Positions 14,429 to 50,822 of a stretch of 64,000 nucleotides of DNA are shown here, piece after piece. The translations under genes were made by a program, and so were the position numbers. Below the pieces are notes generated by a model that saw nothing but the letters and a program-made list of their open reading frames with translations, was not told the origin of the DNA and made no database searches. The stretch is taken from positions 62,001 to 126,000 of IMG/VR virus record IMGVR_UViG_3300042540_001822; one strand, 5' to 3'. The stretch's first letter is position 1; each line of letters starts with the position of its first letter.

Positions 14429-15247
14429 ATGAAACACCTCCAATCCTTTTCCCTGTTCGAAGCCCAAACTTCTGTCCTGACCACAGACCAAGAGGCATTT
14501 TTGAATGAATACATCAAAGGAGCATGGTCGGTCAATCCAACAACAGGTCTGGTCGATGTGGAGGGAAATTTTGCTTGTAGTTCCAAAAGGCTGAAGTCTC
14601 TGTCGGGCATCTCGTTCGGACATGTGAGTGGGAATTTCGCCTGTTTCAACAACCAACTGACCTCCCTGAAAGGAGCACCACAGACGGTGGGTGGGGGTTT
14701 CGATTGTTCTTATAACGATCTCACTTCCCTGGAAGGAGCACCACAGACGGTGGGTGGGGATTTCAATTGCTTTTATAATTACAATCTTAAATCCTTGGAA
14801 GGAGCACCTCGGACTGTGGGTGTGAATTTCGATTGTTCTTATAACGATCTCACTTCCCTGGAAGGAGCACCTCAGACGGTGGGTGGGGATTTCAATTGCT
14901 TTTATAATTACAATCTTAAATCCTTGGAAGGAGCACCTCGGACTGTGGGTGTGAATTTCCTTTCTGACAAATTCCAATTAGAAGAAGGCGAATGGAACAT
15001 GCAAGGATGGCTGGAGGTTTTGAACACAGGAACGGAAGAAGCCAAAAAATTGATTTCCACCCTGCCATGGCTACAACCGGACTGGTGGAACTTGGAACTC
15101 CAACGGGATCCCGGTAAAACAGTTCATCTATTGGGGTCTTTATGGAAACATATGCCAAAGGACATGCAATCTGCAATTAAGATTCCCGGGGGATATGAAG
15201 ATGATTTCGAACTGTTTTCTGGATTTAACGAGCTGGGCTTGTTTTAG
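14429..15247 (+). CDS. LRR-like variable-module protein 1 (5 modules)
   Basis: FxCxxNxLTSLEGAPQTV repeats; start moved to MKHLQ; internal 129-bp duplication. Confidence 0.9.
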   Translation: MKHLQSFSLFEAQTSVLTTDQEAFLNEYIKGAWSVNPTTGLVDVEGNFACSSKRLKSLSGISFGHVSGNFACFNNQLTSLKGAPQTVGGGFDCSYNDLTSLEGAPQTVGGDFNCFYNYNLKSLEGAPRTVGVNFDCSYNDLTSLEGAPQTVGGDFNCFYNYNLKSLEGAPRTVGVNFLSDKFQLEEGEWNMQGWLEVLNTGTEEAKKLISTLPWLQPDWWNLELQRDPGKTVHLLGSLWKHMPKDMQSAIKIPGGYEDDFELFSGFNELGLF

Positions 15248-15262
15248 AGGATATATAGGAGA

Positions 15263-15886
15263 ATGAAACACCTCCAATCCTTTTCCCTGTTCGAAGCCCA
15301 AACTTCTTTCCTGACAACCGACCAAAAGGAATTTTTAAATGAATGCACCAAAGGAGCATGGTCGGTCAACCGGCAGACCGGTCTGGTCAATGTGGAGGGG
15401 AATTTTGACTGTAGTTTCAAATCACTAAAGTCTCTGCCTGACATCTCGTTCGGACACGTCAGTGGTCATTACGGCTGTTTCAACAACCAACTGACCTCCC
15501 TCGAGGGAGCACCCCAGACGGTAGGCGGGGGTTTCTACTGTTCCAACAACAAACTGACCTCCCTCGAAGGATCCCCACAGACTGTGGGTGGGGATTTTTG
15601 GTGTGACGAATTCGAATTAGATTCAGGCAAATGGAACATGCAAGGATGGGTGGAAGTTCTGAACACAGGAACACCAGCAGCCCAAAAATTGATTTCCACC
15701 CTTCCATGGATCCAACCGGACTGGTGGAACCTGGAACTCCAACGGGATCCCGGGAAGACGGTTCATCTATTGGCCACTGCATGGAATCACATGCCAAAGG
15801 ACATGCAATCTGGAATTAAGATTCCTCGGGGATATGAAGGTGATTTCGAACTGTTTTCCGGATTTGACGAGCTGGGCTTGTTTTAA
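15263..15886 (+). CDS. LRR-like variable-module protein 2 (2 modules)
   Basis: Paralogue; ends SGFDELGLF. Confidence 0.9.
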   Translation: MKHLQSFSLFEAQTSFLTTDQKEFLNECTKGAWSVNRQTGLVNVEGNFDCSFKSLKSLPDISFGHVSGHYGCFNNQLTSLEGAPQTVGGGFYCSNNKLTSLEGSPQTVGGDFWCDEFELDSGKWNMQGWVEVLNTGTPAAQKLISTLPWIQPDWWNLELQRDPGKTVHLLATAWNHMPKDMQSGIKIPRGYEGDFELFSGFDELGLF

Positions 15887-15903
15887 AGGATATATATAAG
15901 GAC

Positions 15904-16716
15904 ATGAAACACCTCCAGTCCTTCGTACTTTTCGAAGCCCAAACTTCTGTCCTGACACCCCGCCAAAATAAATTTTTGAATGGATGCACCAAAGAAACAT
16001 GGTCGGTCAACCGGCAGACTGGTCTGGTCGATGTGAAGGGAAATTTTGACTGTAGTTTCAAATCACTAAAGTCTCTGCATGGCATCTCGTTCGGAAACGT
16101 CAGTGGTCATTTTGGCTGTATATACAACCAACTGACCTCCCTGAAAGGATCACCCCAGACGGTGGGTGGGAATTTCAACTGTTCCACCAACCGACTGACT
16201 TCTCTAGAAGGAGCACCGCAGAAGGTGGGTGTGAGTTTCGACTGTGGTGTAAACAAATTGACCTCCTTGAAAGGATCACCACAGACGGTGGGTGGGATTT
16301 TCTCCTGTTACAACAACCGACTGACCTCTCTCGAAGGAGCACCTCAGAAGGTTGGCTCGAATTTTTCTTGTACTTTTAACGATCTCACTTCCCTGAAAGG
16401 AGCACCTGAGACGGTGGGTGGGTATTTTACGTGTGACGAATTCAAATTAGATTCGGGTGAATGGAACATGGAAGGATGGGTGGAGGTTTTGAACACAGGA
16501 ACACCAGCAGCCCAAAAATTGATTTCCACCCTTCCATGGCTCCAACCAGACTGGTGGAACTCGGAACTCCAACGGGATCCAGCGAAAACAGTTCATCTAT
16601 TGGGGTCTTCATGGAAACATATGCCAAAGGACATTCAATCTGCAATTAAGATTCCTCGGGGATATGAAGGTGATTTTGAATTGTTTTCTGGATTTGACGA
16701 GCTGGGGTTGTTTTAA
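15904..16716 (+). CDS. LRR-like variable-module protein 3 (5 modules)
   Basis: Paralogue. Confidence 0.9.
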   Translation: MKHLQSFVLFEAQTSVLTPRQNKFLNGCTKETWSVNRQTGLVDVKGNFDCSFKSLKSLHGISFGNVSGHFGCIYNQLTSLKGSPQTVGGNFNCSTNRLTSLEGAPQKVGVSFDCGVNKLTSLKGSPQTVGGIFSCYNNRLTSLEGAPQKVGSNFSCTFNDLTSLKGAPETVGGYFTCDEFKLDSGEWNMEGWVEVLNTGTPAAQKLISTLPWLQPDWWNSELQRDPAKTVHLLGSSWKHMPKDIQSAIKIPRGYEGDFELFSGFDELGLF

Positions 16717-16731
16717 AGGATATATAGAGGG

Positions 16732-17544
16732 ATGAAACACATCCAATCCTTTTCTCTGTTCGAAGCCCAAACTTCTGTCCTGACCACAGACCAAGAGGCA
16801 TTTTTGAATGAATTCACCGACGGGACCTGGTCGGTTAATCCAACAACTGGTTTGGTGGACGTTCAGGGTGATTTTAACTGTTTCGGTCAAGGTCTGAAAT
16901 CACTTCGAAAAATATCTTTCGGTCATGTGAGTGGGTATTTCTCCTTTTCCGACAACCAACTGACCTCCCTGGCAGGGGCACCCCAGACGGTGAGTGGGCA
17001 TTTCTTCTGTTCCCGCAACCAACTGACCTCCCTTAAAGGAGCACCCCAGACGGTGGATGGGCCTTTCTACTGTTACAAAAACAAACTGACCTCCCTCGAA
17101 GGAGCACCTCAGACGGTGTATGGGGATTTCCGGTGTTACAATAACCAACTGACCTCCCTAGAAGGAGCACCACAGACGGTGGGCGGGGATTTCTCTTGCT
17201 ACAACAACCAACTGACCTCCCTGGAAGGAGCACCTCAGACGGTGGGTGGGTATTTTACGTGTGACGAATTCCAATTAGATTCGGGTGAATGGAACATGGA
17301 AGGATGGCTGAGGGTTTTGAAAACAGGAAAAACAAAAGCCAAAAAATTGATTCTCACCCTGCCATGGCTACAACCGGACTGGTGGAACTCGGAACTTCAG
17401 CGGGATCCAGGGAAAACCGTTCATCTATTGGGGTCTTTGTGGAAACATATGCCAAAGGACATGCAATCTGGAATTAAGATTCCTCGGGGATATGAAGGTG
17501 ATTTTGAATTGTTTTCTGGATTTGACGAGCTGGGGTTGTTTTAA
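16732..17544 (+). CDS. LRR-like variable-module protein 4 (5 modules)
   Basis: Paralogue. Confidence 0.9.
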   Translation: MKHIQSFSLFEAQTSVLTTDQEAFLNEFTDGTWSVNPTTGLVDVQGDFNCFGQGLKSLRKISFGHVSGYFSFSDNQLTSLAGAPQTVSGHFFCSRNQLTSLKGAPQTVDGPFYCYKNKLTSLEGAPQTVYGDFRCYNNQLTSLEGAPQTVGGDFSCYNNQLTSLEGAPQTVGGYFTCDEFQLDSGEWNMEGWLRVLKTGKTKAKKLILTLPWLQPDWWNSELQRDPGKTVHLLGSLWKHMPKDMQSGIKIPRGYEGDFELFSGFDELGLF

Positions 17545-17559
17545 AGGATATATAGGAGA

Positions 17560-18384
17560 ATGAAACACCTCCAGTCCTTCGTACTTTTCGAAGCCAAAGC
17601 TGCTCGTCTTCCTTCTGGACTTACTCAAAGTCAAGAAAATTTCTTGAACCGACACACCAGAGGAACATGGTCTGTTAATCCAACGACCGGTCTGGTAGAT
17701 GTTTTTGGGGAATTTTACTGTTTCGGTCAAGGTCTGAAATCACTTCGAAAAATATCTTTCGGTCATGTGAGTGGGAATTTCGACTTTTCTTCCAACAAAC
17801 AAACCTCTCTGAAAGGAGCACCCCAGACGGTTAAACGTCAATTCAATTGTTCTGATAACGAACTGACCTCCCTGGAAGGAGCACCTCAGGAGGTAGGTAG
17901 GAGTTTCTACTGTTACAAAAACAAACTGACTTCCCTAGAAGGATCACCTAAGACTGTAGGCGGTGATTTCGACTGTGCTATCAACCATCTGACTTCCCTT
18001 AAAGGAGCACCACAAACGGTGGATGGTCGTTTCTACTGTGATAGGAACAAATTAACCTCCCTGGAAGGAGCACCTCAGACGGTGGTTGGGAATTTTAAGT
18101 GTGACGAATTCGAATTAGATTCAGGTGAATGGAACATGGAAGGATGGCTGAGGGTTTTGAAAACAGGAAAAACAAAAGCCAGAAAATTGATTTGCACCCT
18201 TCCATGGCTACAACCGAACTGGTGGAACTCTGAACTTCAGCGGGATCCCGGTAAAACAGTTCATCTATTGGGGTCTTTGTGGAAACATATGCCAAAGGAC
18301 ATGCAATCTGGAATTAAGATTCCTCGGGGATATGAAGGTGATTTTGAATTGTTTTCTGGATTTGACGAGCTGGGGCTGTTTTAA
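17560..18384 (+). CDS. LRR-like variable-module protein 5 (5 modules)
   Basis: Paralogue. Confidence 0.9.
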   Translation: MKHLQSFVLFEAKAARLPSGLTQSQENFLNRHTRGTWSVNPTTGLVDVFGEFYCFGQGLKSLRKISFGHVSGNFDFSSNKQTSLKGAPQTVKRQFNCSDNELTSLEGAPQEVGRSFYCYKNKLTSLEGSPKTVGGDFDCAINHLTSLKGAPQTVDGRFYCDRNKLTSLEGAPQTVVGNFKCDEFELDSGEWNMEGWLRVLKTGKTKARKLICTLPWLQPNWWNSELQRDPGKTVHLLGSLWKHMPKDMQSGIKIPRGYEGDFELFSGFDELGLF

Positions 18385-18399
18385 AGGATATATAAGGGC

Positions 18400-19278
18400 A
18401 TGAAATATCTCGTTTCATTTGTCCTTTTCGAAACCGAAAAGACTTCAGGCCTGACACCCGGCCAAGAGGCATTTTTGAATGAATGCTCCAGCAAGACCTG
18501 GTCGGTTAACCGGCAGAATGGTCTGGTCGATGTGCAAGGAGGTTTTACTTGTAGTTTCAAATCCCTAACGTCTCTGCCTGACATCTCGTTCGGAAACGTC
18601 AGTGGTCATTTCATCTGTTCCAACAACCAAATGACCTCCCTTGATGGAGCACCACAGAAGGTGGGTGGGATTTTCTCCTGTGCCGGCAATCAGCTGACCT
18701 CCCTAAAAGGAGCAACCCAGAATGTGGGCGGGAATTTTTGGTGTCACCAAAACCAGCTGACCTCCCTGGAAGGAGCACCCCAGACGGTGAACGGGAATTT
18801 CCACTGTTACTACAACCGACTGACCTCTCTCGAAGGAGCACCCCAGACGGTAAAAAAGAATTTCCACTGTTACAAAAACCAACTGACCTCACTTAAAGGA
18901 GCACCTGAGACGGTGGGTGGGAATTTTGAATGTTCCAACAACAAACTCCAATCCCTGGAAGGAGCACCTCATACGATAAACGGGGGTTTTCGGTGTGACG
19001 AATTCCATTTATATTCAGGCAAATGGAACATGCAAGGATGGGTGGAGGTTTTGAACACAGGAACACCAGCAGCCCAAAAATTGATTTCCACCCTTCCATG
19101 GATCCAACCGGACTGGTGGAACCAGGAACTCCAAAGGGATCCTGGGAAGACGGTTCATCTGTTGTCTACCATGTGGAACCACATGCCAAAGGACATGCAA
19201 TCTGCAATTCAGATCCCTCGGGGATATGAAGGTGATTTTGAATTGTTTACTGGATTTGACGAGCTGGGCTTGTTTTAA
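18400..19278 (+). CDS. LRR-like variable-module protein 6 (6 modules)
   Basis: Paralogue. Confidence 0.9.
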   Translation: MKYLVSFVLFETEKTSGLTPGQEAFLNECSSKTWSVNRQNGLVDVQGGFTCSFKSLTSLPDISFGNVSGHFICSNNQMTSLDGAPQKVGGIFSCAGNQLTSLKGATQNVGGNFWCHQNQLTSLEGAPQTVNGNFHCYYNRLTSLEGAPQTVKKNFHCYKNQLTSLKGAPETVGGNFECSNNKLQSLEGAPHTINGGFRCDEFHLYSGKWNMQGWVEVLNTGTPAAQKLISTLPWIQPDWWNQELQRDPGKTVHLLSTMWNHMPKDMQSAIQIPRGYEGDFELFTGFDELGLF

Positions 19279-19295
19279 AGGATATATATAGGAGA

Positions 19296-20171
19296 ATGAA
19301 ACACATTCAATCCTTTTCCCTGTTCGAAGCCCAAACTTCTGTCCTGACAACCGACCAAGAGGAATTTTTAAATGAATGCACCGACGGGACCTGGTCGGTT
19401 AATCCAACAACAGGTCTGGTAGATGTTAAAGGAGATTTTGATTGTAGTTCCAAAAGGCTGAAGTCTTTGTCGGGCATCTCGTTCGGACATGTCAGTGGGT
19501 ATTTCTTCTGTTCCAACAACCAATTGACCTCCCTGAAAGGAGCACCTCAGACGGTGAGTGGGACTTTCTTCTGTACTGACAACAAACTGACCTCCCTGAA
19601 AGGAGCACCACAGACGGTGGGTGGGAGTTTCTACTGCGGTGAAAACCAATTGACCTCCCTGGAAGGTGCACCCCAGACGGTGAGTGAGGATTTTTGGTGT
19701 CACCAAAACCGACTGACCTCCCTCGAAGGAGCACCCCAGACGGTGGGTGGAAGTTTCAACTGTATGGACAACCGGCTGACCTCCCTGGCGGGAGCACCTC
19801 AGACGGTGGATGTGGATTTCAATTGCTTTCATAACAATCTTAAATCCTTGGAAGGAGCACCTCAGAAGGTGGGTAGGAATTTTAAGTGTAACGGATTCCA
19901 ATTAGATCCAGGCAAATGGAACATGGAAGGATGGCTGGAGGTTCTGAACACAGGAACACCAGCAGCCCAAAAATTGATTCTAACCCTTCCATGGCTACAA
20001 CCGAACTGGTGGAACTCTGAACTTCAGCGGGATCCCGGTAAAACAGTTCATCTATTGGCCACTGTATGGAATGACATGACAAAGAACATGCAATCTGCAA
20101 TTAAGATTCCTAAGGGATATGAAGATGATTTCGAACTGTTTTCTGGATTTGACGAGCTGGGCTTGTTTTAA
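19296..20171 (+). CDS. LRR-like variable-module protein 7 (6 modules)
   Basis: Paralogue. Confidence 0.9.
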   Translation: MKHIQSFSLFEAQTSVLTTDQEEFLNECTDGTWSVNPTTGLVDVKGDFDCSSKRLKSLSGISFGHVSGYFFCSNNQLTSLKGAPQTVSGTFFCTDNKLTSLKGAPQTVGGSFYCGENQLTSLEGAPQTVSEDFWCHQNRLTSLEGAPQTVGGSFNCMDNRLTSLAGAPQTVDVDFNCFHNNLKSLEGAPQKVGRNFKCNGFQLDPGKWNMEGWLEVLNTGTPAAQKLILTLPWLQPNWWNSELQRDPGKTVHLLATVWNDMTKNMQSAIKIPKGYEDDFELFSGFDELGLF

Positions 20172-20186: not shown

Positions 20187-20810
20187 ATGAAACACATCCA
20201 ATCCTTTTCTCTGTTCGAAGCCCAAACTTCTGTCCTGACAACCGACCAAGAGGAATTTTTAAATGAATGCACCGACGGGACCTGGTCGGTCAACCGGCAC
20301 ACTGGTCTGGTCAATGTGCAAGGAGGTTTTGCTTGTAGTTTCAAAAGTCTAACGTCTCTGAATGGCATCTCGTTCGGACACGTCAGTGGTAATTTCTTCT
20401 GTTTCTACAACCATCTGACCTCCCTGGAAGGAGCACCTCAGACGGTGGGTGGGGATTTCTTCTGTGATAAAAACAGATTAACCTCCCTGGAAGGAGCACC
20501 ACAAGAAATAAATGGTCGATTTCTTTGTGATGAATTTGAATTAATCAAGGGTAAATGGAACATTGAAGGATGGGCGGAGGTTCTGAACACGGGAACGGAA
20601 GAAGCCAAAAAATTGATTCTCACCCTTCCGTGGCTCCAACCGGACTGGTGGAACTCGGAACTCCAACGGGATCCAGGGAAGACGGTTCATCTATTGGCCA
20701 CTGTATGGAAGAGCATGCCAAAGGACATGCAATCTGCAATTAAGATCCCTCGGGGATATGAAGGTGATTTCGAATTGTTTTCTGGATTTGACGAGCTGGG
20801 TTTGTTTTAA
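20187..20810 (+). CDS. LRR-like variable-module protein 8 (2 modules)
   Basis: Paralogue. Confidence 0.9.
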   Translation: MKHIQSFSLFEAQTSVLTTDQEEFLNECTDGTWSVNRHTGLVNVQGGFACSFKSLTSLNGISFGHVSGNFFCFYNHLTSLEGAPQTVGGDFFCDKNRLTSLEGAPQEINGRFLCDEFELIKGKWNIEGWAEVLNTGTEEAKKLILTLPWLQPDWWNSELQRDPGKTVHLLATVWKSMPKDMQSAIKIPRGYEGDFELFSGFDELGLF

Positions 20811-20910
20811 AGGATAATCGCAGATCCGGAGTGAATTTTTTTTGGAAAAATTCGAAAGTTTGAGGATTTATATGTAATTTTGGGGTAAACACACTTCAAA
20901 AAAAATTGTA

Positions 20911-21303
20911 ATGAACACACCAGTAAGTTTTGAATTAGCTAAGTTGCTAAAAGAAAAAGGATTTGATGGTAATTACTTTCATTATTGGAATATGGTAAAT
21001 CATAGCGGAGAATGGAAAGTAGATACAAGTATATGGGAATATACTGACAATTATATTGAAGCACCAACCATTGCAGAAGTAGTAATGTGGTTGTATGAGA
21101 AGCATGGGATTTGGATTTATCCATTACCTATAGATGATGATATGAAATTATGGCAAGCAAGAATTATTAAAGGTGAACCATTTAATAAATTAAGCAATAC
21201 CTTAAAAATAATATCTTATGGGGAAATTTCCTACAGAGGTATATATTCACCAACAGAAGCTTATGAAGCTGCTATCAAATACACTTTAAAAAACTTAATC
21301 TAA
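20911..21303 (+). CDS. Phage protein, MNTPVSFELAKLLKEK family
   Basis: Conserved ends shared with 21698..22063. Confidence 0.8.
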   Translation: MNTPVSFELAKLLKEKGFDGNYFHYWNMVNHSGEWKVDTSIWEYTDNYIEAPTIAEVVMWLYEKHGIWIYPLPIDDDMKLWQARIIKGEPFNKLSNTLKIISYGEISYRGIYSPTEAYEAAIKYTLKNLI

Positions 21304-26424: not shown

Positions 26425-26997
26425 ATGAAACACCTGAAATTATTCGAAAATTTCACGAAAGATGATTTGGATAATTTGATTTCGGGATTTGAGGAACTCG
26501 GAATTAACAAAAAGAAATTTCTCAGAATTAAATTTGTTGGTATTTACGTAACTGAATCTGATAGAACAAATGAAGCTGATTTCAGATTTCATAATGATAG
26601 AATTTTGAGGATCCCAATTTCGGAATTTGAAAAAGAAGATTTAGAACCCGGCAAAGAATCTTTTTCGAAAACCCTCCAAGATTCGGTTTTATATGCCATC
26701 AGAAATGGTGAAGCCGAAGTAAATCCAGATTGTGTGGGTGAATTATATATTGGCGAAACTTTTGATCCTAGTACCTTAATCTCCGTCGCCGAAAAAACAC
26801 AAACCCTGGATGGATTTTGGGATCTTGTCACCCAATATTTATATGATGTTGGAACTGATATCATTTATGACCATTTCAGTAATGAAGGTATAATGGAAGA
26901 ATTCGCTGATTTTTTCTTTGACGAATGCAAGAATTTAAAGCCAAAATTTTGGATAGAAAAAGAAGGTGAAAAATGGGGGGAAATCAGTAAAATATAA
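26425..26997 (+). CDS. Acidic protein with N-terminal LISGFEELG motif
   Basis: MKHLKLFENF...DLDNLISGFEELGI. Confidence 0.8.
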   Translation: MKHLKLFENFTKDDLDNLISGFEELGINKKKFLRIKFVGIYVTESDRTNEADFRFHNDRILRIPISEFEKEDLEPGKESFSKTLQDSVLYAIRNGEAEVNPDCVGELYIGETFDPSTLISVAEKTQTLDGFWDLVTQYLYDVGTDIIYDHFSNEGIMEEFADFFFDECKNLKPKFWIEKEGEKWGEISKI

Positions 26998-36600: not shown

Positions 36601-36619
36601 GGGATAAATAAAATTTAAA

Positions 36620-37120: not shown

Positions 37121-37134
37121 AAAAATAAAAAATT

Positions 37135-39940: not shown

Positions 39941-40010
39941 TTTTTTTAACGATTATATTTAATCCAAACTTTTATGTTTCAAAACTGTTTTCATCATGAT
40001 ATATAAATCT

Positions 40011-41201: not shown

Positions 41202-41215
41202 AAATTTAAATCAAA

Positions 41216-41986
41216 ATGAAACATTTATTTCCCTTTCCTCTGTTTGAATCCCGCAAACCTCCTTTAACCAAAGAACAGATTCAATTTTTGGAATTTCACA
41301 CTACCGGAACATGTAATTATAATTTTTCCTCCGGGAAAATAGACGTGGATGGGGTTTTTAGTTTAGAAGAAGATCAAGATTCTCTGATGGGATTGGAATT
41401 TGGAGTGGTCGAAGGAGGTTTCTCAATAAATGCAAATTTTCAAAATTTGAAAGGATTTCCAGAGGTAGTCGATGGTTTATTTTTTCTCCAATCAGATTTA
41501 ATTTCAGATCTCACCGGATCACCACAGTTTATAGAAAATTGTATGATACACAGCAAAAGCTTAAAATCTTTAAAGGGGGGTCCCAGAGAAGTAGGATCTA
41601 TGAGTCTCACCATTGAATTTCCATCTATTCAAAACTTACAAGGGGCTCCTGAAATTGTCAAAGAAAAGTTTAGATTAAGAATTTCGGGGTTCAAAAGTGG
41701 ATCCCCCATGGTGATAGTGTTTCTGCCTTTTACCTGGAACTTAGAGGGAAAGATTGAAATGTTAAAATTACAAAAGGGGGAAGAAAAAAATTTACTTTCT
41801 ACTTTAATTTCTGTGGAGGATGTTAAAAAATCTTTTAAAGAAAGACCATCACAAACTTTATATGACCTCGTAGAAGTGTGGAATTTACCCGGATTTTCAG
41901 AGATAAAAAAACAAATTCAAATCCCAGCAAATTTTAGGGACCAATTTGATTTAATGACAGGATTTAATGAACTAGGATTATTTTAG
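41216..41986 (+). CDS. Divergent LRR-like paralogue (about 4 degenerate modules)
   Basis: LKGFP/LTGSP/LKGGP/LQGAP; ends TGFNELGLF. Confidence 0.8.
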   Translation: MKHLFPFPLFESRKPPLTKEQIQFLEFHTTGTCNYNFSSGKIDVDGVFSLEEDQDSLMGLEFGVVEGGFSINANFQNLKGFPEVVDGLFFLQSDLISDLTGSPQFIENCMIHSKSLKSLKGGPREVGSMSLTIEFPSIQNLQGAPEIVKEKFRLRISGFKSGSPMVIVFLPFTWNLEGKIEMLKLQKGEEKNLLSTLISVEDVKKSFKERPSQTLYDLVEVWNLPGFSEIKKQIQIPANFRDQFDLMTGFNELGLF

Positions 41987-43251: not shown

Positions 43252-43312
43252 TTTATTTTTCTTGGAACAAATCTTGAGTTTGTAAATTAAACTCAAGATA
43301 AATTTGTTTTTT

Positions 43313-44587
43313 ATGAGCAATAAAAATCCTAGAATTTTTGTGCAAATTGCATCCTATAGAGATCCTCAGTTGGTGAATACTATAGAGGACATGATCAAAA
43401 ATTCTAAATTTCCGAAAAATTTGGTTATTGGATTGTGTAGACAATATCACCCCGAGGATGGGTTCGACAATGTGGATAAGTTCAGGAAAGACAAAAGATT
43501 CAGAATTATTGATGTTCCTTATTCTGAAAGTAAAGGTGTTTGCTGGGCGAGAAACCAAGTCCAACAGAAATACTCTGGTGAAGAATTTACCCTTCAAATT
43601 GATTCACACATGAGATTTGCTCCTGATTGGGATGAAACACTTGTAGGAATGGTAAAACAGTTGCAGGAAGAAGGCTATGAAAAACCCTTGCTCACTTCTT
43701 ATGTTTCTTCTTTCGATCCAGAAAATGATCCAGCCGCTAGGGTACAAGAACCATGGAGAATGTCATTTGACCGTTTTATTCCAGAGGGTGCAGTTTTCTT
43801 TTTGCCTGAAACAATTCCAAACTGGCGCAATCTGACATCTCCGGTTCCTTCAAGATTTTACTCTGCGCATTTTGCCTTCACTTTAGGACAATTTTCAACC
43901 GAGGTCCAACATAATCCAAACTATTATTTCCACGGGGAGGAAATTTCGATTGCTGTTCGTGCCTTCACCTGGGGGTATGATTTATTTCATCCACATAAAG
44001 TTGTTATTTGGCACGAATATACTCGAAAAGGAAGGACAAAACAGTGGGACGACGACAAAGAATGGGTCAAAAAAAACAATGTCTCTCATCTAACAAACAG
44101 AAAATTGTTTGGGATGGACGGAGAGATTCGAGAAGGACACGATGGACCTTATGGTTTTGGTTCTATCAGAACTCTTCAACAATACGAAGAATATGCGGGT
44201 CTCCTGTTTGAAAAGAGAGCGGTACAACAGGAAACATTGGACAAATATTATCCACCTAATCCCGGGATCAACATGTTCGAAGGAAATGAAGAAGCATGGA
44301 AAAATTCATTCTCACAAATCTTCAAGCACTGTATTGATATTAATTATAATCAAGTCACAGAAACGGACTATGATTTTTGGGTTGTTGCTTTCCACGATGA
44401 AACAGACAAGACACTTTTTCGAAAAGATGCAGATAAGAATGAGATAAATAGAATGAAAAATGATCCAGATGGTTACTGTAAGGTGTGGAGAGAATTCAAC
44501 ACGACCACAAAACCTAAATACTGGGTCGTTTGGCCACACTCTGAATCCAAAGGATGGTGTGAAAGAATAACCGGAAATTTACCATAA
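43313..44587 (+). CDS. GlcNAc-transferase, GT60/Gnt1-like (GlcNAc family)
   Basis: IFVQIASYRD, GVCWAR, LQIDSHMRF, GEE, WHEY match the Dictyostelium Gnt1-type signature. Confidence 0.85.
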   Translation: MSNKNPRIFVQIASYRDPQLVNTIEDMIKNSKFPKNLVIGLCRQYHPEDGFDNVDKFRKDKRFRIIDVPYSESKGVCWARNQVQQKYSGEEFTLQIDSHMRFAPDWDETLVGMVKQLQEEGYEKPLLTSYVSSFDPENDPAARVQEPWRMSFDRFIPEGAVFFLPETIPNWRNLTSPVPSRFYSAHFAFTLGQFSTEVQHNPNYYFHGEEISIAVRAFTWGYDLFHPHKVVIWHEYTRKGRTKQWDDDKEWVKKNNVSHLTNRKLFGMDGEIREGHDGPYGFGSIRTLQQYEEYAGLLFEKRAVQQETLDKYYPPNPGINMFEGNEEAWKNSFSQIFKHCIDINYNQVTETDYDFWVVAFHDETDKTLFRKDADKNEINRMKNDPDGYCKVWREFNTTTKPKYWVVWPHSESKGWCERITGNLP

Positions 44588-44590
44588 AAA

Positions 44591-45892
44591 ATGAAAATAG
44601 TAACTTGTCAATTTTACACCAACAATATTCCATATAGAGAATTTTCAAAAGAAATAAATGAAAATTATTCAAAAGAGAATGGGTATATTTATTATGCTGA
44701 AAATAACAATGAAAAAATAATAGATAAATTAGAAGGAAGGTCAATTACTTGGTACAAGCCTCATTTATTACAAGAAATGATGATGAAGTACCCAACATGT
44801 GATTATATTCTATATTTAGATATTGATGCGGTTTTTATAAATAAAGAAAGAAAAATTCAGGAATTTATAACAAATGATTTTTCAATACTAATGTCTTCTG
44901 ACCATGGTCCTTCAATAGTAAATGCGGGTGTAATTTTATTGAAGAATAATAAATTCAATTATGAATTAATGTCTAAATGGTGGGAATTAGGAGAAGAATT
45001 CCCCGAGTATAAAACAGGTCTTTGGCATGACCAAACTTGTTTAAAGTTTTTGTATGAAAGACTTGAAGATAAATCTATTTTTAAAATTATTGAAAACAAC
45101 GATATAAATTCAAGAATTTATAATAAAGATAAATTTATTTTTCACGCTTTTAGTTACGGTCATTTACCTAACAGATCTTTAGACTTGGTTTATAATGATA
45201 TTTTTAACAAAGAAGAATCAGGAAAAGAAACTTTAAGCCAGATTTCAAAAAAATTTCCAACAGATAAAGATTTCACTCATAATTATTTTGATGCCGTATA
45301 TGAACCACATTTCTCCAAAATAAGAGAGAACGTAAAAAAATTTTGTGAAATAGGTGTTGGTGGTTTTTGGGGTGAAGTAGGATGGGTTCCCGGAAACTCT
45401 TTAAGAGTATGGGAAGAATATTTTCCTAATGCTAACATACTTGGTTTAGATCTTAATGATTATGATTTGGTAAGTGAGAATAGAATTACTGTTGATTATA
45501 TTGACCAATCTAAAAAAGAACTTGTGGACGAATATGCGGAAAAATTATACGATTATGATATAATTTTAGATGATGGTTCACATAATATTCATGACCAACA
45601 AATTACTTTTGCATCTTTTTTTAAATCATTAAAAAAAGGTGGAATATTTGTTATTGAAGATTTACATAGTAGTATTGAAGTAAAAATACCTGAAAAAAGA
45701 ACAGTTTGGGGTTGGGGCGACCCAACAAAAATTACAACATTAGAAATGTTAGAAAGCTTTAAACAAACAGGTAAAATTATTTCTGATTACTTAAGTGATG
45801 AAGAAAAGTATTATTTAGAAGATAATATTAGTTCCGTAGAAATTTTTACTAACTCACCTACAAGTATAACATCAATAATAATAAAAAAATAA
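44591..45892 (+). CDS. GT34-like glycosyltransferase fused to a class I methyltransferase
   Basis: WYKP...YLDIDA...NAGV...HDQ; then TDK...HNY, EIGV, DIILDDGSH, GGIFVIEDL. Confidence 0.8.
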   Translation: MKIVTCQFYTNNIPYREFSKEINENYSKENGYIYYAENNNEKIIDKLEGRSITWYKPHLLQEMMMKYPTCDYILYLDIDAVFINKERKIQEFITNDFSILMSSDHGPSIVNAGVILLKNNKFNYELMSKWWELGEEFPEYKTGLWHDQTCLKFLYERLEDKSIFKIIENNDINSRIYNKDKFIFHAFSYGHLPNRSLDLVYNDIFNKEESGKETLSQISKKFPTDKDFTHNYFDAVYEPHFSKIRENVKKFCEIGVGGFWGEVGWVPGNSLRVWEEYFPNANILGLDLNDYDLVSENRITVDYIDQSKKELVDEYAEKLYDYDIILDDGSHNIHDQQITFASFFKSLKKGGIFVIEDLHSSIEVKIPEKRTVWGWGDPTKITTLEMLESFKQTGKIISDYLSDEEKYYLEDNISSVEIFTNSPTSITSIIIKK

Positions 45893-45992
45893 TTATGTTA
45901 GAAATTTATAGAACTAGACCAGATTGGATTATAAGGGCTATTGTAACAAAAGATCCTTCAAGAATAGTTAAAGTTAAACCCGAATAATTCCA

Positions 45993-47027
45993 ATGGACAA
46001 TTTCAATACAAATCAAATTTCAACGGATGTTGAAAATTCAATTCAGAATTCAGAGGAAATAAAAATAATCGTTGTTTATCACACCTATTTGGTCAATCAA
46101 TGGAGGATTCAAGTTGAAGAACAGTTAAAAAGATTATATGATTCTGGATTATATGATGCAGCAGATAAAATTTGTGTTACTTCCGATTTAGGAGAAACCA
46201 CAAGAGAAGAGGCAATAGAATTTTTCTCTGCATTTCCAAAATTAGAAATTGAATTATCGGATCAAAATTATGGAGAATATTTAGCGATTAGAAAAGTAAG
46301 AGAACTATCCTTCCTCCATAAAAATGCTAAAATTTTGAACTTTCATACTAAAGGGATTTTCAACAATTGGATAACTTTTAATGGAAAAGAAAAATCTGAA
46401 AGAAAAATTAAAAATTCAAAAGCATGGAGATATTGCATGGAATATTTCACCATAGACAGATGGAGAGAGTGTGTTGAATTACTTGAAACTTGGGACAATG
46501 TTGGGGTCACGTGCAACGGAGGATGGTATTGGGGTAATTTCTGGTGGAGTTCATTCAAACACATCAGTAAAACAATAGAACCCCATCACTCCACCAGATG
46601 GACAAATGAAGCCTGGCTTAATTGTGAAATTCCAGACTCTAAAAACTTCGAGTTCTGGCATTTTGAAATTGATCCATTCCAATCCGAATTAAGGCCAGAA
46701 TTTTACATGGGGGGATTTGAGAAATACAAACAAGATAGACTAATAGTTAAATCTGCTTTATGGGGATCATGTCCTTTTGAAATAGACGAAGGTTATTCTG
46801 GTTACAAATTCGGAATTACTGAAGATGTAACAGAAAAAGTACAGGCTTCAATCGATCAAAACGGTGGAACGAAAATAGATTTCACAGTAGGGTTTAATTT
46901 TTTTAATACTGACCCTATTTTCGGTTATAGGAAATGTTTAGATGTTGAATTATATCCAGAAACAAATCCAAATTTAATTATTAGATTAGGACAAAGAGAA
47001 GGACACCTATTTAAATTCTCTTTTTAA
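45993..47027 (+). CDS. Putative glycosyltransferase-like protein
   Basis: FHTKG...WR..MEYF...GNFWW...R...EAW pattern; located in the glycosylation cluster. Confidence 0.55.
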   Translation: MDNFNTNQISTDVENSIQNSEEIKIIVVYHTYLVNQWRIQVEEQLKRLYDSGLYDAADKICVTSDLGETTREEAIEFFSAFPKLEIELSDQNYGEYLAIRKVRELSFLHKNAKILNFHTKGIFNNWITFNGKEKSERKIKNSKAWRYCMEYFTIDRWRECVELLETWDNVGVTCNGGWYWGNFWWSSFKHISKTIEPHHSTRWTNEAWLNCEIPDSKNFEFWHFEIDPFQSELRPEFYMGGFEKYKQDRLIVKSALWGSCPFEIDEGYSGYKFGITEDVTEKVQASIDQNGGTKIDFTVGFNFFNTDPIFGYRKCLDVELYPETNPNLIIRLGQREGHLFKFSF

Positions 47028-47057
47028 AATTTCTTTTGTGATTATCTACAAAATTAT

Positions 47058-48740
47058 ATGAAAAACAACTTTACAATTGTTACAGGATTATGGGATTTGA
47101 AAAGAGGAGATTTGGAAGGTTGGGCTAAAAGAGATTTCTCCTATTATAAATCTAAATTTTTTGAGTTACTCGAAACAGATGTGCCCATGGTCATTTGGAT
47201 TTCTGATGACCTAAGAACCGAGGTAGAGGAGGTGAGACAAGGGAAACCCACATCGATTCAAATTAAAAATTTGGAGGATTTTAAAACTTGGAATCCTTTT
47301 TTCCATCAAATACAAGAAATTAGAAATCGACCTTCTTGGCAAAATTTTGCAGGTTGGCTTCCAGAGTCACCACAGGCCGCTTTAGAATTTTATAATCCGA
47401 TGATGTTTGCCAAAATGTTCATGGTTAACGACTCTGCTATTTTAAATCCATTTAACACAGATTATTTCTTTTGGGTAGATGGGGGTTTAACCAACACGGT
47501 TCCTAAAGGATATTTTACAAAAGATGATGTTTTAAAAAATCTACCTAGATTTGTGATAAAACACAACGATAAATTTATTCAAATTTCTTATCCTTATACA
47601 GCAAACGAAGAAATACATGGATTTGAAAGGAAAGCCATGGCATCTTATTGTGGGGTTGACTATGTGAATTATGTTTGTCGTGGTGGGTTTTTTGGAGGTT
47701 CTAAGGAAAGAATACACGAGATCAATTCTCTGTATTATTCGATCATGTCTAAAACTTTACACGCCGGTTACATGGGAGCTGATGAGTGTTTGTTTACCAT
47801 CCTATCACACCAATATCCAGAGTTGACCCATCGTTTTGAGATAGAGGGAAACGGATTGGTGTGGCCTTTTTTTGAAGAACTTAAACATTACTCAGAGGAA
47901 AAGATAAAACTTGATTCGTCTTTTTTGAATCCTGAAAACTGTGGCTTATATGTAATTGGATTCAATAGTCCAAGTCAGTTTCAAACCTTAATTCAATCAA
48001 TGATGGATTATGATCCAGATTTCATCCGAAAGCCCATCAAAATTCTTTTGAATAATTCCACTGATTCCAGCACTACTCCAGAGTATGAAAAATTGTGTTT
48101 AGATTATGGATTCTCCCACGTGAAGATGGATAATCTAGGAATTTGTGGGGGTAGACAGTGGATAGCAGAAGATGCGGCAGAAAGAGAATTTGATTTTTAT
48201 TTTTTCTTTGAGGATGACATGTTTTTCTATCCAAAAGAGGGGGAAAGGTGTAGAAATGGGTTTAACCGTTTTGTGTCTGGATTGTATCAAAAATCTTTAG
48301 AAATTATCAAAGAAAACAATTTTGATTTTCTGAAGTTGAATTATTCCGAATTCTTTGGCGATAACGGTACCCAGTGGTCGTGGTATAATGTACCCCAGAA
48401 CATCAGAGAGAAATTTTTCCCAGAAAAACCTAATTTACCTAAAATAGGACAAGATCCCAATGCTCCTAAGACCGAATACAAAAATATTAGATCTCATAAA
48501 GGAATTCCTTATGTAAACGGTGATATCTATTATTGCAATTGGCCTCAAATTGTAAGTAAGACAGGAAACCAAAAGATGTTTTTAAACACAAAGTGGGCGA
48601 GGCCATACGAGCAAACTTGGATGTCCTATATGTTCCAAGAAATGAAAGATGGAAATCTGTACGCCGGTCTTTTACTTCTAACCCCCACTGAACACAACAG
48701 GTTCGAACACTACGACGGCAAGTTAAGGAAAGAAAGTTAG
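47058..48740 (+). CDS. HtrL/YibB-like glycosyltransferase fused to a second GT-A domain
   Basis: TIVTGLWD, NPFNTDYFFWVDGG, GGFFGG; second domain has FFEDD. Confidence 0.75.
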   Translation: MKNNFTIVTGLWDLKRGDLEGWAKRDFSYYKSKFFELLETDVPMVIWISDDLRTEVEEVRQGKPTSIQIKNLEDFKTWNPFFHQIQEIRNRPSWQNFAGWLPESPQAALEFYNPMMFAKMFMVNDSAILNPFNTDYFFWVDGGLTNTVPKGYFTKDDVLKNLPRFVIKHNDKFIQISYPYTANEEIHGFERKAMASYCGVDYVNYVCRGGFFGGSKERIHEINSLYYSIMSKTLHAGYMGADECLFTILSHQYPELTHRFEIEGNGLVWPFFEELKHYSEEKIKLDSSFLNPENCGLYVIGFNSPSQFQTLIQSMMDYDPDFIRKPIKILLNNSTDSSTTPEYEKLCLDYGFSHVKMDNLGICGGRQWIAEDAAEREFDFYFFFEDDMFFYPKEGERCRNGFNRFVSGLYQKSLEIIKENNFDFLKLNYSEFFGDNGTQWSWYNVPQNIREKFFPEKPNLPKIGQDPNAPKTEYKNIRSHKGIPYVNGDIYYCNWPQIVSKTGNQKMFLNTKWARPYEQTWMSYMFQEMKDGNLYAGLLLLTPTEHNRFEHYDGKLRKES

Positions 48741-48802
48741 ATTTTCATAATTCTTAATTTTAATTTAACATAATTTAACAATTCCGAAAATACATACACG
48801 GA

Positions 48803-49516
48803 ATGAAAACTCTTGTTATTTCCGACGTCCATATTGGATCCAAAGGTTGCTCCTCTGAGGAACTTCTTTATTTGTTGAAAGATCAGTCATTCCACCGTTA
48901 TATTTTGGTTGGTGATATTATCGATGGTTGGCTCTTCAAAAAATACAAAAGATTTACCTACGATCACGCTCGTTTAATTCGAAGATTTTTAAAACTCTCA
49001 AAAACAAAAGAAATCATTTGGATCGCCGGAAATCACGATGAATTTCTCAGAAAATATTTGCCTATGGAGTTGGGGAATATTAGAATTGTAGACGAATGGA
49101 TTGAATCTGGAATTTGGTTCTGTCACGGAGACAAATATGATGGAGTGGTTAAAATGAGGTGGCTTGCCCAATTGGGGGGATTGGGATATGATTTGGCAAT
49201 TGTCATTGATAGAACATTGAAAAAAATGGGATTCAAAAGATCTCTGTCTAAGTATTTAAAGGATAATGTCAAGGCGGCAGTTAAATTTATGACAGACTTT
49301 GAGAAAGAGATGGCGAGACAGGCCGAAAAAAGAGGTTGTCACACCGTGGTGTGTGGACACATACATAATCCAGAATTGAAGGAAATTGGCAAAATCAGAT
49401 ATATTAACACAGGGGATTGGATCGAAAACAACTCCTATCTGATTTTGAATAAAAATTATTGTTCCCTTTACTCCCATGGAAGAGAAATTGACAATTGTTA
49501 TTCCCTGCAAAAATGA
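48803..49516 (+). CDS. LpxH-like metallophosphoesterase (UDP-2,3-diacylglucosamine hydrolase family)
   Basis: SDVHIG, GDIID, GNHD, HGD, GHIH, NTGDW. Confidence 0.85.
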   Translation: MKTLVISDVHIGSKGCSSEELLYLLKDQSFHRYILVGDIIDGWLFKKYKRFTYDHARLIRRFLKLSKTKEIIWIAGNHDEFLRKYLPMELGNIRIVDEWIESGIWFCHGDKYDGVVKMRWLAQLGGLGYDLAIVIDRTLKKMGFKRSLSKYLKDNVKAAVKFMTDFEKEMARQAEKRGCHTVVCGHIHNPELKEIGKIRYINTGDWIENNSYLILNKNYCSLYSHGREIDNCYSLQK

Positions 49517-50183
49517 GGAAAAGTACATTTTTGCCACCCTGGAAAGTTTGGCCAGACAAAATATAGGATCCACCCAAATTTATCTGGCGGATGCTAATTC
49601 TACAGATTTAACTGTTTCTCGGGCCAAGATGGCTTCATTTCTTTTCAATTTGAATTTGAAAATCATTCCTGGTGGTAAGGTTGCAGAGGGTAGAAACACC
49701 GGAGCTTCAATGGCAAAAACCCCGTACGTTTTATTCCTTGATGCCGACGTTACTTTCACTCCACAAATGAATTTGAATTCTTGTGTTCAAAAAATGGACG
49801 GAAAAATCAAATTGATGTCTACAACTCCAGTTTCAAGAACAGAGGGAGATTGGAAGGCTGAAATTTTGTTTTGTCTCAACCGGTGGTGTACGATCTTGAT
49901 AAGTCAAAAAGAACCGTTCTCTGTGGGTTCTTTTACCCTAGTAGAATTAGAATCTTTTTGGTCAAAGGGTGGTTTTGATATAGAGGTAAAACACACAGAA
50001 GATTGGCTTTTTTCCCGTCAATTCGAACCCGGAGAGTTTTGCCTTATTCCAAATTTAATTACCCAGGATTCAAGACGTTTTAAAAGATTTGGTTACCTTA
50101 GAATGGCCAATCTCGTGATTCGAAATTGGAAGAATCGAAAGAACAGAGAACATTTTTTAAAGGAAGCAGGGTACTGGATTTGA
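49476..50183 (+). CDS. Glycosyltransferase family 2
   Basis: IVIPCKNEE, DANSTD, GRNTGA, FLDAD, TED. Confidence 0.88.
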   Translation: MEEKLTIVIPCKNEEKYIFATLESLARQNIGSTQIYLADANSTDLTVSRAKMASFLFNLNLKIIPGGKVAEGRNTGASMAKTPYVLFLDADVTFTPQMNLNSCVQKMDGKIKLMSTTPVSRTEGDWKAEILFCLNRWCTILISQKEPFSVGSFTLVELESFWSKGGFDIEVKHTEDWLFSRQFEPGEFCLIPNLITQDSRRFKRFGYLRMANLVIRNWKNRKNREHFLKEAGYWI

Positions 50184-50195
50184 GATATATAAAAA

Positions 50196-50822
50196 ATGAA
50201 ACATCTGATTCCATTTAGGATCTACGAATCCCAGAAGGCTTCAGGACTTACTCGAAGTCAAGAGGAATTCTTGAACAAATACACCGAAGAAACATGGTCT
50301 GTTAATCCATCGACCGGTCTGGTGGATGTTCAAGGGGATTTTTTTTGTTACGATCGAGGCCTGAAATCCCTGTCAGGCATATCGTTCGGACATGTGAGTG
50401 GGGATTTCTACTGTGGTAAAAACAAATTGGCCTCCCTAGAAGGATCACCCCAGACGGTGGGTGGGGGTTTCTATTGTCAGGGAAACGACCTGACCTCCCT
50501 GGAAGGAGCACCACAAGAAATAAATGGTCGATTTCTTTGTGATGAATTTGAATTAATCAAGGGTAAATGGAACATGCGAGGATGGCTGGAGGTTCTGAAC
50601 ACAGGAACTCCAGAAGACAAAAAATTGATTTCCACCCTTCCGTGGCTCCAACTGGACTGGTGGAACTTGGAACTCCAACGGGATCCAGGGAAAACAGTTC
50701 ATCTGTTGTCCACCATGTGGAATGACATGCCAAAGGACATGCAATCTGCAATCAAGATTCCTAAAGGATATGAAGGTGATTTTGAATTGTTTTCTGGATT
50801 TGACGAGCTGGGGTTGTTTTAA
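50196..50822 (+). CDS. LRR-like variable-module protein 13 (2 modules)
   Basis: Paralogue. Confidence 0.9.
   Translation: MKHLIPFRIYESQKASGLTRSQEEFLNKYTEETWSVNPSTGLVDVQGDFFCYDRGLKSLSGISFGHVSGDFYCGKNKLASLEGSPQTVGGGFYCQGNDLTSLEGAPQEINGRFLCDEFELIKGKWNMRGWLEVLNTGTPEDKKLISTLPWLQLDWWNLELQRDPGKTVHLLSTMWNDMPKDMQSAIKIPKGYEGDFELFSGFDELGLF

Follow-up and report, generated by a model that had tools for sequence, protein, structure and literature searches.

A leucine-rich repeat gene family in a freshwater jumbo phage

We analyzed a 64-kb stretch of DNA, hereafter called the window, which corresponds to bases 62,001-126,000 of the IMG/VR record IMGVR_UViG_3300042540_001822 (linear, 219,475 bp, estimated completeness 88%, GC content 36%). 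The source is a large, uncultivated freshwater jumbo phage, and its genome carries a multigene family of small, soluble leucine-rich repeat (LRR) proteins that is likely to evolve by homologous recombination between its own copies. Exchange between paralogs had been proposed in an initial annotation of the sequence, and the proposal is backed by recombination tests, by the mosaic formed by genes g2, g8 and g13, and by mosaics in related phages. The long identical tracts, the conflict between trees and the changes in both module and gene number place the family among those that evolve by gene conversion and unequal crossing-over.

The gene numbering of the initial annotation corresponds to the 15 canonical family genes that we found in the window (Table 1). 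There are 17 canonical genes in the genome, and 5 divergent members in addition. Genes g16 and g17 are located outside the window, on the minus strand at G000 191,972-193,809. The canonical genes form head-to-tail arrays with spacers of 14-17 nt (15-18 nt start to stop) and also occur as dispersed copies, on both strands.

The canonical proteins are 207-397 amino acids (aa) long and consist of a disordered leader of about 14 residues, followed by an N-cap, by 2-11 modules that are 21 residues long, and by a constant helical C-domain of about 85 residues. The 17 genes contain 83 modules (71 in the window), which are in-register units of 21-22 residues. Their consensus, LTSLEGAPQTVGGDFxCxxNx, is of the cysteine-ladder LRR type. 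Module positions 14, 16, 18, 19 and 21 are hypervariable, with entropies of 2.8-3.7 bits, as compared to at most 2 bits at every other position; the remainder of the module is conserved, and so are the two end domains. The AlphaFold model, with a predicted local distance difference test (pLDDT) score of 92, displays a disordered segment at residues 1-14, followed by an LRR solenoid with two short strands per unit, at "TV" and "FxC", and then by the helical C-domain. The best matches among solved structures were the LRR domains of IpaH, SspH1, YopM, GPIb and internalins, and the top matches in the AlphaFold database were also LRR proteins. The Pfam model LRR_4 gave marginal scores (28.2 for g11 at a cut-off of 27; 20.2, below the cut-off, for g12). 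Thus, based on the in-register units, the modeled solenoid and the top structural matches, we conclude that the family is a member of the LRR superfamily.

Identical tracts and tests of recombination

The tracts reported in the initial annotation were all recovered. The segment GAPQEINGRFLCDEFELIKGKWN is encoded by nucleotide-identical DNA in g8 (20493-20561) and g13 (50505-50573), within a maximal identical tract of 83 nt (20481-20563 = 50493-50575) in two genes that are otherwise 79% identical. Likewise, NQLTSLEGAPQTVNGNFHC is encoded by identical DNA in g6 (18751-18807) and g11 (28310-28366), where the maximal tract covers 58 nt (18751-18808 = 28310-28367). Genes g4 and g5 share CFGQGLKSLRKISFGHVSG on 59 identical nt (16877-16935 = 17717-17775) and WLRVLKTGKTKA inside a 58-nt identical tract (17284-17341 = 18124-18181), and we identified a third tract of 117 nt (17419-17535 = 18259-18375). 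That g4 and g5 differ between these tracts was also confirmed, with divergence over the initial ~140 nt as well as within the modules. Gene g4 is thus a chimera, the 5' end of which is identical to g1 and g8 in tracts of 58 and 53 nt, while the g5-matching part (59, 58 and 117 nt) begins at nt 145. The distance of up to 30 kb given in the initial annotation is surpassed by g16, which shares identical tracts of 52-67 nt with g2, g9 and g12 across 98-116 kb and on opposite strands.

Permutation of the columns of the pairwise alignments yielded p<=5e-5 for the runs in both g8/g13 and g4/g5. The control pair g2/g8 is 84% identical overall and has a longest identical run of just 28 nt, which shows that high identity alone is not the source of the long tracts. 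The first ~300 nt of g8 are 93% identical to g2 and about 60% identical to g13; in the following 83 nt the identity to g13 is 100% and that to g2 drops to 50-70%. The variable part of this patch has a GC content of 28%, as compared to 48% in the rest of g8, and the same end-module variant is found in the low-GC genes g13 and g17. The AT-rich patch and the shared end-module suggest that g8 received the patch from a donor of the g13/g17 type.

Among the 15 core members, the nucleotide identity is 81-96% in the C-domain and 50-89% in the N-domain, and the nearest partners differ by domain. In the pairwise homoplasy index (PHI) test, none of 1000 permutations gave a value as low as that observed, both for the N-domain and for the combined N- and C-domains (p<0.001). 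A GENECONV-type check limited to polymorphic sites also pointed to exchange, with p<0.01 in 26 of 105 pairs for the N-domain and 12 of 105 pairs for the C-domain, where about one pair was expected. The N-domain tree contained a supported clade of g2, g3, g6 and g8; the C-domain tree was star-like and placed g3 with g4 and g5. According to the approximately unbiased (AU) test, the N-domain data reject the C-domain clade of g3, g4 and g5 (p=0.0002), and the C-domain data disfavor two of the N-domain groupings (p=0.051 and 0.019).

Module duplications and the conserved core

The tandem duplication reported in g1 was confirmed: positions 14702-14830 are repeated at 14831-14959, over 129 nt, with a single mismatch at 14743 (A/T, synonymous CCA/CCT). 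The Tandem Repeats Finder (TRF) assigned a period of 129 with 2.3 copies and 94% matches, and the duplicated unit represents two modules (21 and 22 codons). In g16, a duplication of 126 nt is perfect, with the identity continuing over 129 nt, and super-repeats with a period of 126 were detected by TRF in g3, g6 and g7. The two recent two-module duplications in g1 and g16 show unequal exchange. A total of 6 module pairs were identical at 58 or more of 63 nt, as compared to 0.02 expected from a shuffle of codon columns, and 82 pairs at 54 or more of 63 nt, as compared to 2.8 expected. The top four near-identical pairs are accounted for by the two within-gene duplications. The evidence for whole-module transfer between genes is the g6/g11 pair together with the mosaic of a related phage described below.

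The initial annotation further stated that every module contains a conserved core, and this proved too general: a 23-nt core is exact in 11 of the 71 modules in the window and present with at most 3 mismatches in 51. The core may plausibly act as a crossover anchor. Lengths of about 23 nt lie near the lower limit of those used in homologous recombination, and the near-identity flanking the core is often longer than the core itself. Since a tract always ends where the first variable site next to a conserved block is reached, wherever the actual junction was, the crossover junctions cannot be placed from the sequence.

Two further features of the modules were observed. The core (for example at 17212-17250) contains AAGGAG, a perfect Shine-Dalgarno-like hexamer, with an in-frame GTG (Val) about 11 nt downstream, and its Gly and Ala codons (GGA GCA) have synonymous polymorphism (pS) values of 0.07 and 0.16, as compared to 0.4-0.7 in the adjoining codons. 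It is conceivable that initiation or pausing occurs internally at these AAGGAG/GTG sites. Antisense open reading frames (ORFs) of 177-212 aa run through the repeat regions on the minus strand (14339-14977, 19368-19901 and 27815-28441); these are a by-product of stop-free reverse frames in a repeated module and do not constitute evidence for genes.

Related phages, base composition and the wider family

Two related phages are represented by contig families from other metagenomes, which offer an independent comparison. In one of them, locus L076 is 96% identical to the window in the flanks, which comprise g3 on one side and positions 20811-21117 on the other. Between these flanks, L076 has two LRR genes, as compared to five (g4-g8) in the window. 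The first is the ortholog of g3, with a 73-nt g1-type patch in the C-domain. The second is 100% identical to g6 over nt 1-33. It matches g5 in a stretch of 221 nt that contains one mismatch (188 nt are exact) and in a further identical stretch of 69 nt, and it shares identical stretches of 33 and 66 nt with g11. Its C-domain contains tracts of 75 and 84 nt that match g8 and g12. This locus was recovered in four independent assemblies from different samples and two pipelines, at 99.5-100% identity. Loci L074 and L075 are 100% identical to each other and have flanks that are 86-93% identical to the window; a single gene with 5 modules is found where g10 (4 modules) and g11 (11 modules) stand in the window. 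The pair of divergent family members (Table 1) is 93% conserved in L074, which makes the canonical arrays the fluid part of the family. In this divergent pair, the canonical modules are degenerate or absent and the GC content at third codon positions (GC3) is 0.27-0.28.

The GC3 value is 0.47-0.54 in the core members, 0.22-0.37 in the divergent members, g9 and g17, and 0.32 in the other genes. The core members use the codons CTG, ACG and TCC, which are rare elsewhere in the genome. GC-biased gene conversion was considered as the cause and rejected as not general: among 22 other phage loci, the arrays were GC3-richer than their flanks in just 5, and the mismatch goes in both directions. It is more likely that the core clade had a GC-richer origin, by import from a relative or by a founder effect, and then expanded.

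A word-based protein search returned at least 7,258 clusters at 90% identity (E<=1e-5), and the matches listed were all unnamed or "hypothetical". With the N-domain as the only query, 384 clusters at 50% identity were identified, and in almost all cases the match was located at the protein N-terminus. In IMG/VR, the family was found at 70 loci or more, mostly on contigs of 50-410 kb. Many of these contain tandem arrays, with up to 14 genes in 15 kb (L035), and such arrays occur in many phage contigs of 100-400 kb; they have the same leader, N-cap and module type, combined with a C-terminal domain that is lineage-specific. Cultured carriers include the Vibrio phages VB_VaC_SRILMA, VB_VaC_TDDLMA and phiKT1024, in which these genes are listed as hypothetical. 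In the N-domain tree, copies from one phage lineage mostly group together, with shared subfamilies for g11 with L003, and for g9, g10, g13-g15 and g17 with L008. This tree fits birth-and-death evolution with lineage-specific expansion. DNA searches of a phage collection with the array and with the adjoining genes gave no match, and a gene for a 476-aa protein upstream of the first array had no relatives in IMG/VR; synteny was therefore taken from metagenome contigs.

Assembly support

A contig from a different sample (L002) is 100% identical over positions 16414-17699, which cover the end of g3, the whole of g4 and the start of g5, and a 6.9-kb contig from a third sample has the same gene lengths for g4-g8. 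Logan contigs from seven lake runs of several studies matched the sequence at 99-100%, and those of the best-matching runs differed from it at 0-1 positions. These contigs are built with k=31, are interrupted within the arrays at intervals of 150-450 nt and branch into paralogs (loose ends at 16726 and 19288). No alternative joints with at least 30 nt on the shorter side were found in the Logan contigs of the seven runs, with the exception of one joint in one run (X10), which goes back 239, with a 31-nt side and 16 inserted letters. Most of the alternative joints and skips had 20-21 nt on the shorter side and matched paralogs. All of them, X10 included, were treated as cross-mapping. The best cover of the duplication junction in g1 is one 56-nt unitig (14801-14856, with 30 and 26 nt on the two sides), which is consistent with the duplication and falls below the bridging criterion of 31 nt on both sides.

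Alternative explanations

Several observations weigh against recombination between the phage's own copies, or limit how far it can be taken. The PHI test was not significant for the C-domain alone (p=0.14); for this domain we rely on the run-length and tree tests, and the AU value of 0.051 is borderline. The site-permutation tests assume equal rates along the sequence and are therefore inflated by local conservation. The pair of g6 module 3 and g11 module 6 is the sole near-identical module pair between genes, and the remaining excess of module similarity could derive from ordinary shared descent. The high GC3 of the core members hints that a part of the family is a recent import, so that some of the mosaics may stem from exchange between phages and not within one genome. 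The 231-kb contig L001 is identical to the window along 20.8 kb; however, it may itself be the record from which the window was taken. For the junction of the g1 duplication, no contig from another run spans with 31 nt or more on both sides. Finally, positive selection and absence of constraint are indistinguishable at the hypervariable codons, since these are saturated.

Mosaics can also be created by a short-read assembler that jumps between near-identical paralogs, and the record is a metagenome assembly, in which the k=31 contigs break and branch in the arrays and the g1 junction is seen on the 56-nt unitig only. We nevertheless consider chimeras very unlikely, given the agreement of L002 and of the third sample with the arrays, the repeated recovery of L076 by two pipelines and the identity of L074 and L075. 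Moreover, the identical tracts between paralogs of this genome are at most 117 nt, which is shorter than typical reads and than the assembly words of k=141, and open frames and whole modules are kept in all genes. Divergence by duplication without any exchange, with the long tracts due to strong purifying selection or slow mutation, would agree with the high C-domain identity in all copies, with the PHI result for this domain and with the presence of conserved blocks at the same places in many pairs. This explanation is also highly improbable, because the identical tracts contain hypervariable codons and synonymous sites, and partners switch by segment (from g2 to g13 in g8; from g1/g8 to g5 in g4). 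Furthermore, run lengths differ at equal overall identity (28 nt in g2/g8 as compared to 83 nt in g8/g13), the tests on polymorphic sites are still strongly positive, and the N- and C-domain trees conflict. The initial annotation had suggested combinatorial assembly, and the variable positions are indeed few and sharply defined, with short conserved cores flanking them, as might be produced by a diversity-generating retroelement or by copy-choice from donor cassettes as in the variable lymphocyte receptors (VLRs). However, no match to a reverse transcriptase (RVT_1) was obtained in the 219-kb record, although the positive controls did match. Each copy is a complete gene that has a start context of its own, instead of an incomplete gene accompanied by silent cassettes. 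The Logan contigs of the seven runs show a single structure without well-supported alternative joints, and the variation is not limited to adenine-templated codons. We give programmed diversity next to no credence and conclude that the mosaic pattern is evolutionary, not programmed.

It is also possible, although in our judgment unlikely, that exchange takes place mainly between the genomes of co-infecting related phages and that intragenomic conversion is minor. The L076 locus, with 96% identical flanks around a different content and with segments 100% identical to g5, g6 and g11, is in line with such a route. So is the N-domain of g11, which groups with L003 genes that have another C-domain, and so are the GC3 values, with core members that differ from the genome, divergent members that resemble it and arrays that are mismatched to their flanks across 22 loci. 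On the other hand, the two fresh tandem duplications and the AT-rich 83-nt patch in g8 are most simply explained as intragenomic events, and for each of the tracts listed the genome contains the donor as well as the recipient. The two routes do not exclude each other. In recombination between family copies, the reading that we prefer, misaligned exchange between modules adds or removes modules, as the two fresh duplications show, and misaligned exchange between adjoining genes alters the number of genes among related phages. Short patches of about 30-190 nt are copied between paralogs and result in mosaics. Exchange may occur within one genome or between co-infecting relatives, which the data do not separate.

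Variable surface and possible function

In the structural model, the buried F and C of the beta-strand are interspersed with positions 14, 16 and 18, which face outward on the canonical LRR binding (beta) face. The ratio of non-synonymous to synonymous polymorphism (pN/pS) was 0.97 at the five variable positions and 0.34 at the remaining positions. The per-column values among all modules are saturated at the variable positions and we make no claim of positive selection. An estimate of dN/dS from positional counterparts (0.72 for variable codons as compared to 0.23-0.29 elsewhere) was discarded, since two of the three counterparts were mosaics.

Shuffling of variable-face modules on a constant scaffold would generate a repertoire of binding specificities, with the constant C-domain serving as a common docking or effector end. 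The combination of a fixed scaffold, a variable face and a lineage-specific constant end supports an adaptor or receptor design. We tentatively suggest that the LRR proteins may form a set of binders directed at variable targets of the host. No signal peptide was found in the N-terminal sequence, and we infer that binding of host proteins inside the cell (takeover or counter-defense) or carriage in the virion is most likely. Among intracellular takeover or counter-defense, injected virion proteins and virion-surface adhesins we cannot choose.

Homology searches lend no support to any such function. The PADLOC-DB profiles for anti-phage defense and counter-defense gave no match for g4, g8 and g11, and no Pfam model covers the N- or the C-domain. 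The C-domain modeled alone reached a pLDDT of 91, but fold searches with it returned generic helical repeats only (Foldseek E>2, VIA Z<=5.6), and an Atlas feature search returned members of the LRR family only.

C-terminal motif, leader and upstream motif

The motif [GSE]-F-[E/D...]-[E/D]-L-G-[L/I], typically LISGFEDLGI or LFSGFDELGLF, was present in 35 ORFs of the genome, as compared to 0.16 expected from shuffled proteins. It constitutes the extreme C-terminus of the LRR family proteins. It also occurs in about 16 small unrelated proteins, mostly at residues ~21-45 but further inside in two of them (residues 131 and 487). Examples of ORFs with this motif in the window are 26425-26997, 29072-30970, 36091-37638 and 52750-53250. 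The motif is confined to this phage and its close relatives L074-L079 and does not occur in the other 70 loci. A reading of the C-terminal ELGLF as a beta-clamp motif was dropped because other proteins have the motif without the terminal F.

The DNA motif (G/A)ATATATA is located 4-20 nt upstream of the ATG in every arrayed LRR gene and in about 15 other genes, for example at 12892, 26425, 34146 and 39996 in the window and at G000 6696, 19779 and 62551 on the minus strand. Many of the encoded proteins start with M-K-H/R-L/I-x-x-F-x-x-F/Y-E, a peptide that is disordered in the model. GGAG-like bases are found just 0-1 nt before the ATG, which is too near for a normal Shine-Dalgarno site. The (G/A)ATATATA motif could be a phage promoter that gives near-leaderless mRNAs, or the peptide could be a targeting or cleavage leader; both are possible.

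A far-reaching and rather improbable interpretation is that the arrays represent a germline "phage receptor" repertoire. The common N-terminal leader and the lineage-specific C-terminal tag (SGF-D/E-E-LG-L/I), which in the same or a similar form also mark the ~16 unrelated small proteins, would then route dozens of LRR binders and these other proteins to one destination, for example by packaging into the capsid, cleavage of the leader and injection with the DNA, and the LRR faces would neutralize diverse host defense proteins. If so, module shuffling would be the phage-side counterpart of the diversification of host immune receptors.

Genome context

Public runs with matching sequence come from many studies of lake-water and freshwater metagenomes, dated 2016-2025. 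The genes of the record include ribonucleotide reductase, topoisomerase II, helicase, pieces of a DNA polymerase and an Mre11-like exonuclease, together with a weak match to a RecA-like ATPase, and a sigma-70-like factor appears among the genes tabulated for the identical contig L001. No structural genes were recognized among the large ORFs of the record. Its glycosyltransferases are nearest to those of XacN1 and Xoo-sp13, jumbo phages of Xanthomonas and Stenotrophomonas.

A glycosyltransferase-like cluster is located at 43304-50183. It encodes a GlcNAc-type transferase with 45-49% identity to jumbo-phage proteins (XacN1, Xoo-sp13 and CM1), a fusion of a GMA12/MNN10-like transferase with a methyltransferase, and an HtrL/YibB-like protein. 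Inspection by eye added a metallophosphoesterase-like and a family-2-transferase-like ORF. The cluster suggests that either DNA or a surface polymer is modified. The UmuC-like error-prone polymerase is encoded 2 kb from the g13-g15 array, next to a 156-aa ORF without Pfam match. The lysin and the adjacent NAGPA-like glycosidase probably form a lysis module. A non-coding tandem repeat of 56 nt (2.9 copies, 81% matches) at 12337-12501 lies upstream of the gene for the 476-aa protein mentioned above. Gene g17, which adjoins g16, has a g8/g13-type end module, and the two genes form an inverted mini-array 70-116 kb from the other arrays.

Table 1. Members of the LRR family and other features. Positions refer to the window, except for g16 (G000).
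Feature	Position	Strand	Remarks
tRNA-Arg(TCT)	8996-9069	-	
g1	14429-15247	+	5 modules; ATG by homology, listed ORF start TTG 14411
Two-module 129-nt tandem duplication in g1	14702-14959	+	one synonymous mismatch, 14743
g2	15263-15886	+	2 modules; backbone relative of g8, 93% identical over first ~300 nt
g3	15904-16716	+	5 modules; L076 ortholog 96% identical
g4	16732-17544	+	5 modules; chimera
g5	17560-18384	+	5 modules; identical tracts with g4 (59, 58, 117 nt) and g7 (76 nt)
g6	18400-19278	+	6 modules; module 3 (18751-18808) identical over 58 nt to g11 module 6
g7	19296-20171	+	6 modules; 80-nt identical N-domain tract with g8 (19320-19399 = 20211-20290)
g8	20187-20810	+	2 modules; g2-like backbone, AT-rich g13/g17-type patch
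83-nt tract in g8	20481-20563	+	identical to g13 50493-50575; spans last module and C-domain start
g9	25529-26410	+	6 modules; divergent N-domain; GC3 0.36
g10	27002-27754	+	4 modules
g11	27770-28963	+	11 modules; N-domain groups with L003 genes of different C-domain
g12	32634-33458	+	5 modules; 67-nt identical C-domain tract with g16, 98 kb away, opposite strand
Two divergent family members (401 and 256 aa)	39996-41986	+	family C-domain; GF(S/N)ELGLF end
g13	50196-50822	+	2 modules; holds 83-nt tract common with g8 (50493-50575)
g14	50837-51589	+	4 modules
g15	51604-52335	+	3 modules; outlying, ~70% nt identity in C-domain
Y-family UmuC-like error-prone DNA polymerase	54321-55538	-	Pfam IMS, IMS_C, DUF4113
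LysM-domain protein	55973-57199		
Peptidoglycan-binding, chitinase-class-I-like lysin beside NAGPA-like phosphodiester glycosidase	58148-59835	-	
g16	G000 192859-193809	-	perfect two-module 126-nt tandem duplication

Comparison with known systems

The repeat length of 20-22 residues is similar to that in internalin J (InlJ), IpaH, SspH1 and YopM. InlJ of Listeria also has 21-residue cysteine-ladder LRRs, in which a conserved cysteine replaces a hydrophobic residue of the core. The InlJ profile (NCBIfam NF033187) scored 77 and 27 bits, as compared to its cut-off of 1700, which places the phage proteins outside this family. Nor do they belong to the IpaH/SspH effector class, as the structural match is limited to the LRR part (template modeling score 0.25-0.38). 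Unlike InlJ, IpaH, SspH1 and YopM, the phage proteins have no signal peptide, wall anchor, NEL ligase or secretion signal, and their N- and C-domains are unrelated to those of these proteins.

Polymorphic arrays of small genes with a common short N-terminal leader are also found in the T4-type hyperplastic regions and the internal-protein locus, and as in T4-type phages the conserved upstream DNA motifs could mediate shuffling. The LRR leader M-K-H-L/I-x-x-F-x-x-F/Y-E invites comparison with the capsid-targeting sequence of T4. LRR proteins are not known from these regions. The profiles Peptidase_S77 (prohead protease) and Gp23 (major capsid protein) had no match in the record, but are uninformative since the controls matched nowhere either; Peptidase_S78 is absent from the record, which is an estimated 88% complete.

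The chimallivirus DUF7941 paralogs (Goslar) combine a constant module with variable domains, some of them LRR or beta-helix, and are proposed to recognize the host (10.64898/2026.04.21.720040); these proteins are virion-associated according to mass spectrometry (10.64898/2026.04.21.720040). Both families consist of jumbo-phage paralogs in which a constant module is joined to variable binding domains. In the DUF7941 family, however, the constant module is unrelated and N-terminal.

Diversification of LRR surfaces by module shuffling is a hallmark of the immune receptors of plants and jawless vertebrates, and is here observed in a bacterial virus. In the lamprey VLRs, LRR modules are recombined via short identity, which gives many binding surfaces on a fixed frame. 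The phage family resembles the VLRs in that LRR modules are recombined on a fixed frame. However, VLR assembly is somatic, programmed and deaminase-dependent and starts from an incomplete germline gene and silent cassettes, whereas the phage copies are complete and the mosaics evolutionary.

The clusters of plant LRR resistance genes, such as nucleotide-binding LRR (NLR) and receptor-like protein loci (Cf-4/9, RPP8, Pi2/9), evolve by unequal crossing-over and short-tract conversion. Like these clusters, for which examples have been described (PMC6771003, PMC3492116), the phage arrays display tandem LRR paralogs, changes in repeat and gene number, and mosaics, and the variability is concentrated at the x positions of the xLxLxx beta-strand. 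Unlike the plant proteins, the phage proteins are only 207-397 aa long, without NB-ARC, kinase or membrane part, and have a 21-residue cysteine-ladder repeat and a constant helical C-domain without known fold. Moreover, the phage is haploid, so that exchange is between paralogs or co-infecting genomes and not between alleles.

The family is large across phages, has no characterized member, and its end domains have no Pfam model. If the LRR proteins bind host targets, they would represent a major unexplored layer of phage-host specificity in lakes and would naturally supply binding scaffolds that are compact and recombinable. If they are ordinary structural decorations, the arrays are still a clear case of concerted, birth-and-death evolution in a phage genome. 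No description of LRR multigene arrays in phages was found in the literature searched. The evolutionary mode is thus a known one, as in the plant resistance-gene clusters, in a setting where it has barely been described: the mechanism is classical, and its occurrence in jumbo phages, in a family of LRR arrays that is very large and unannotated, is new to the literature searched.

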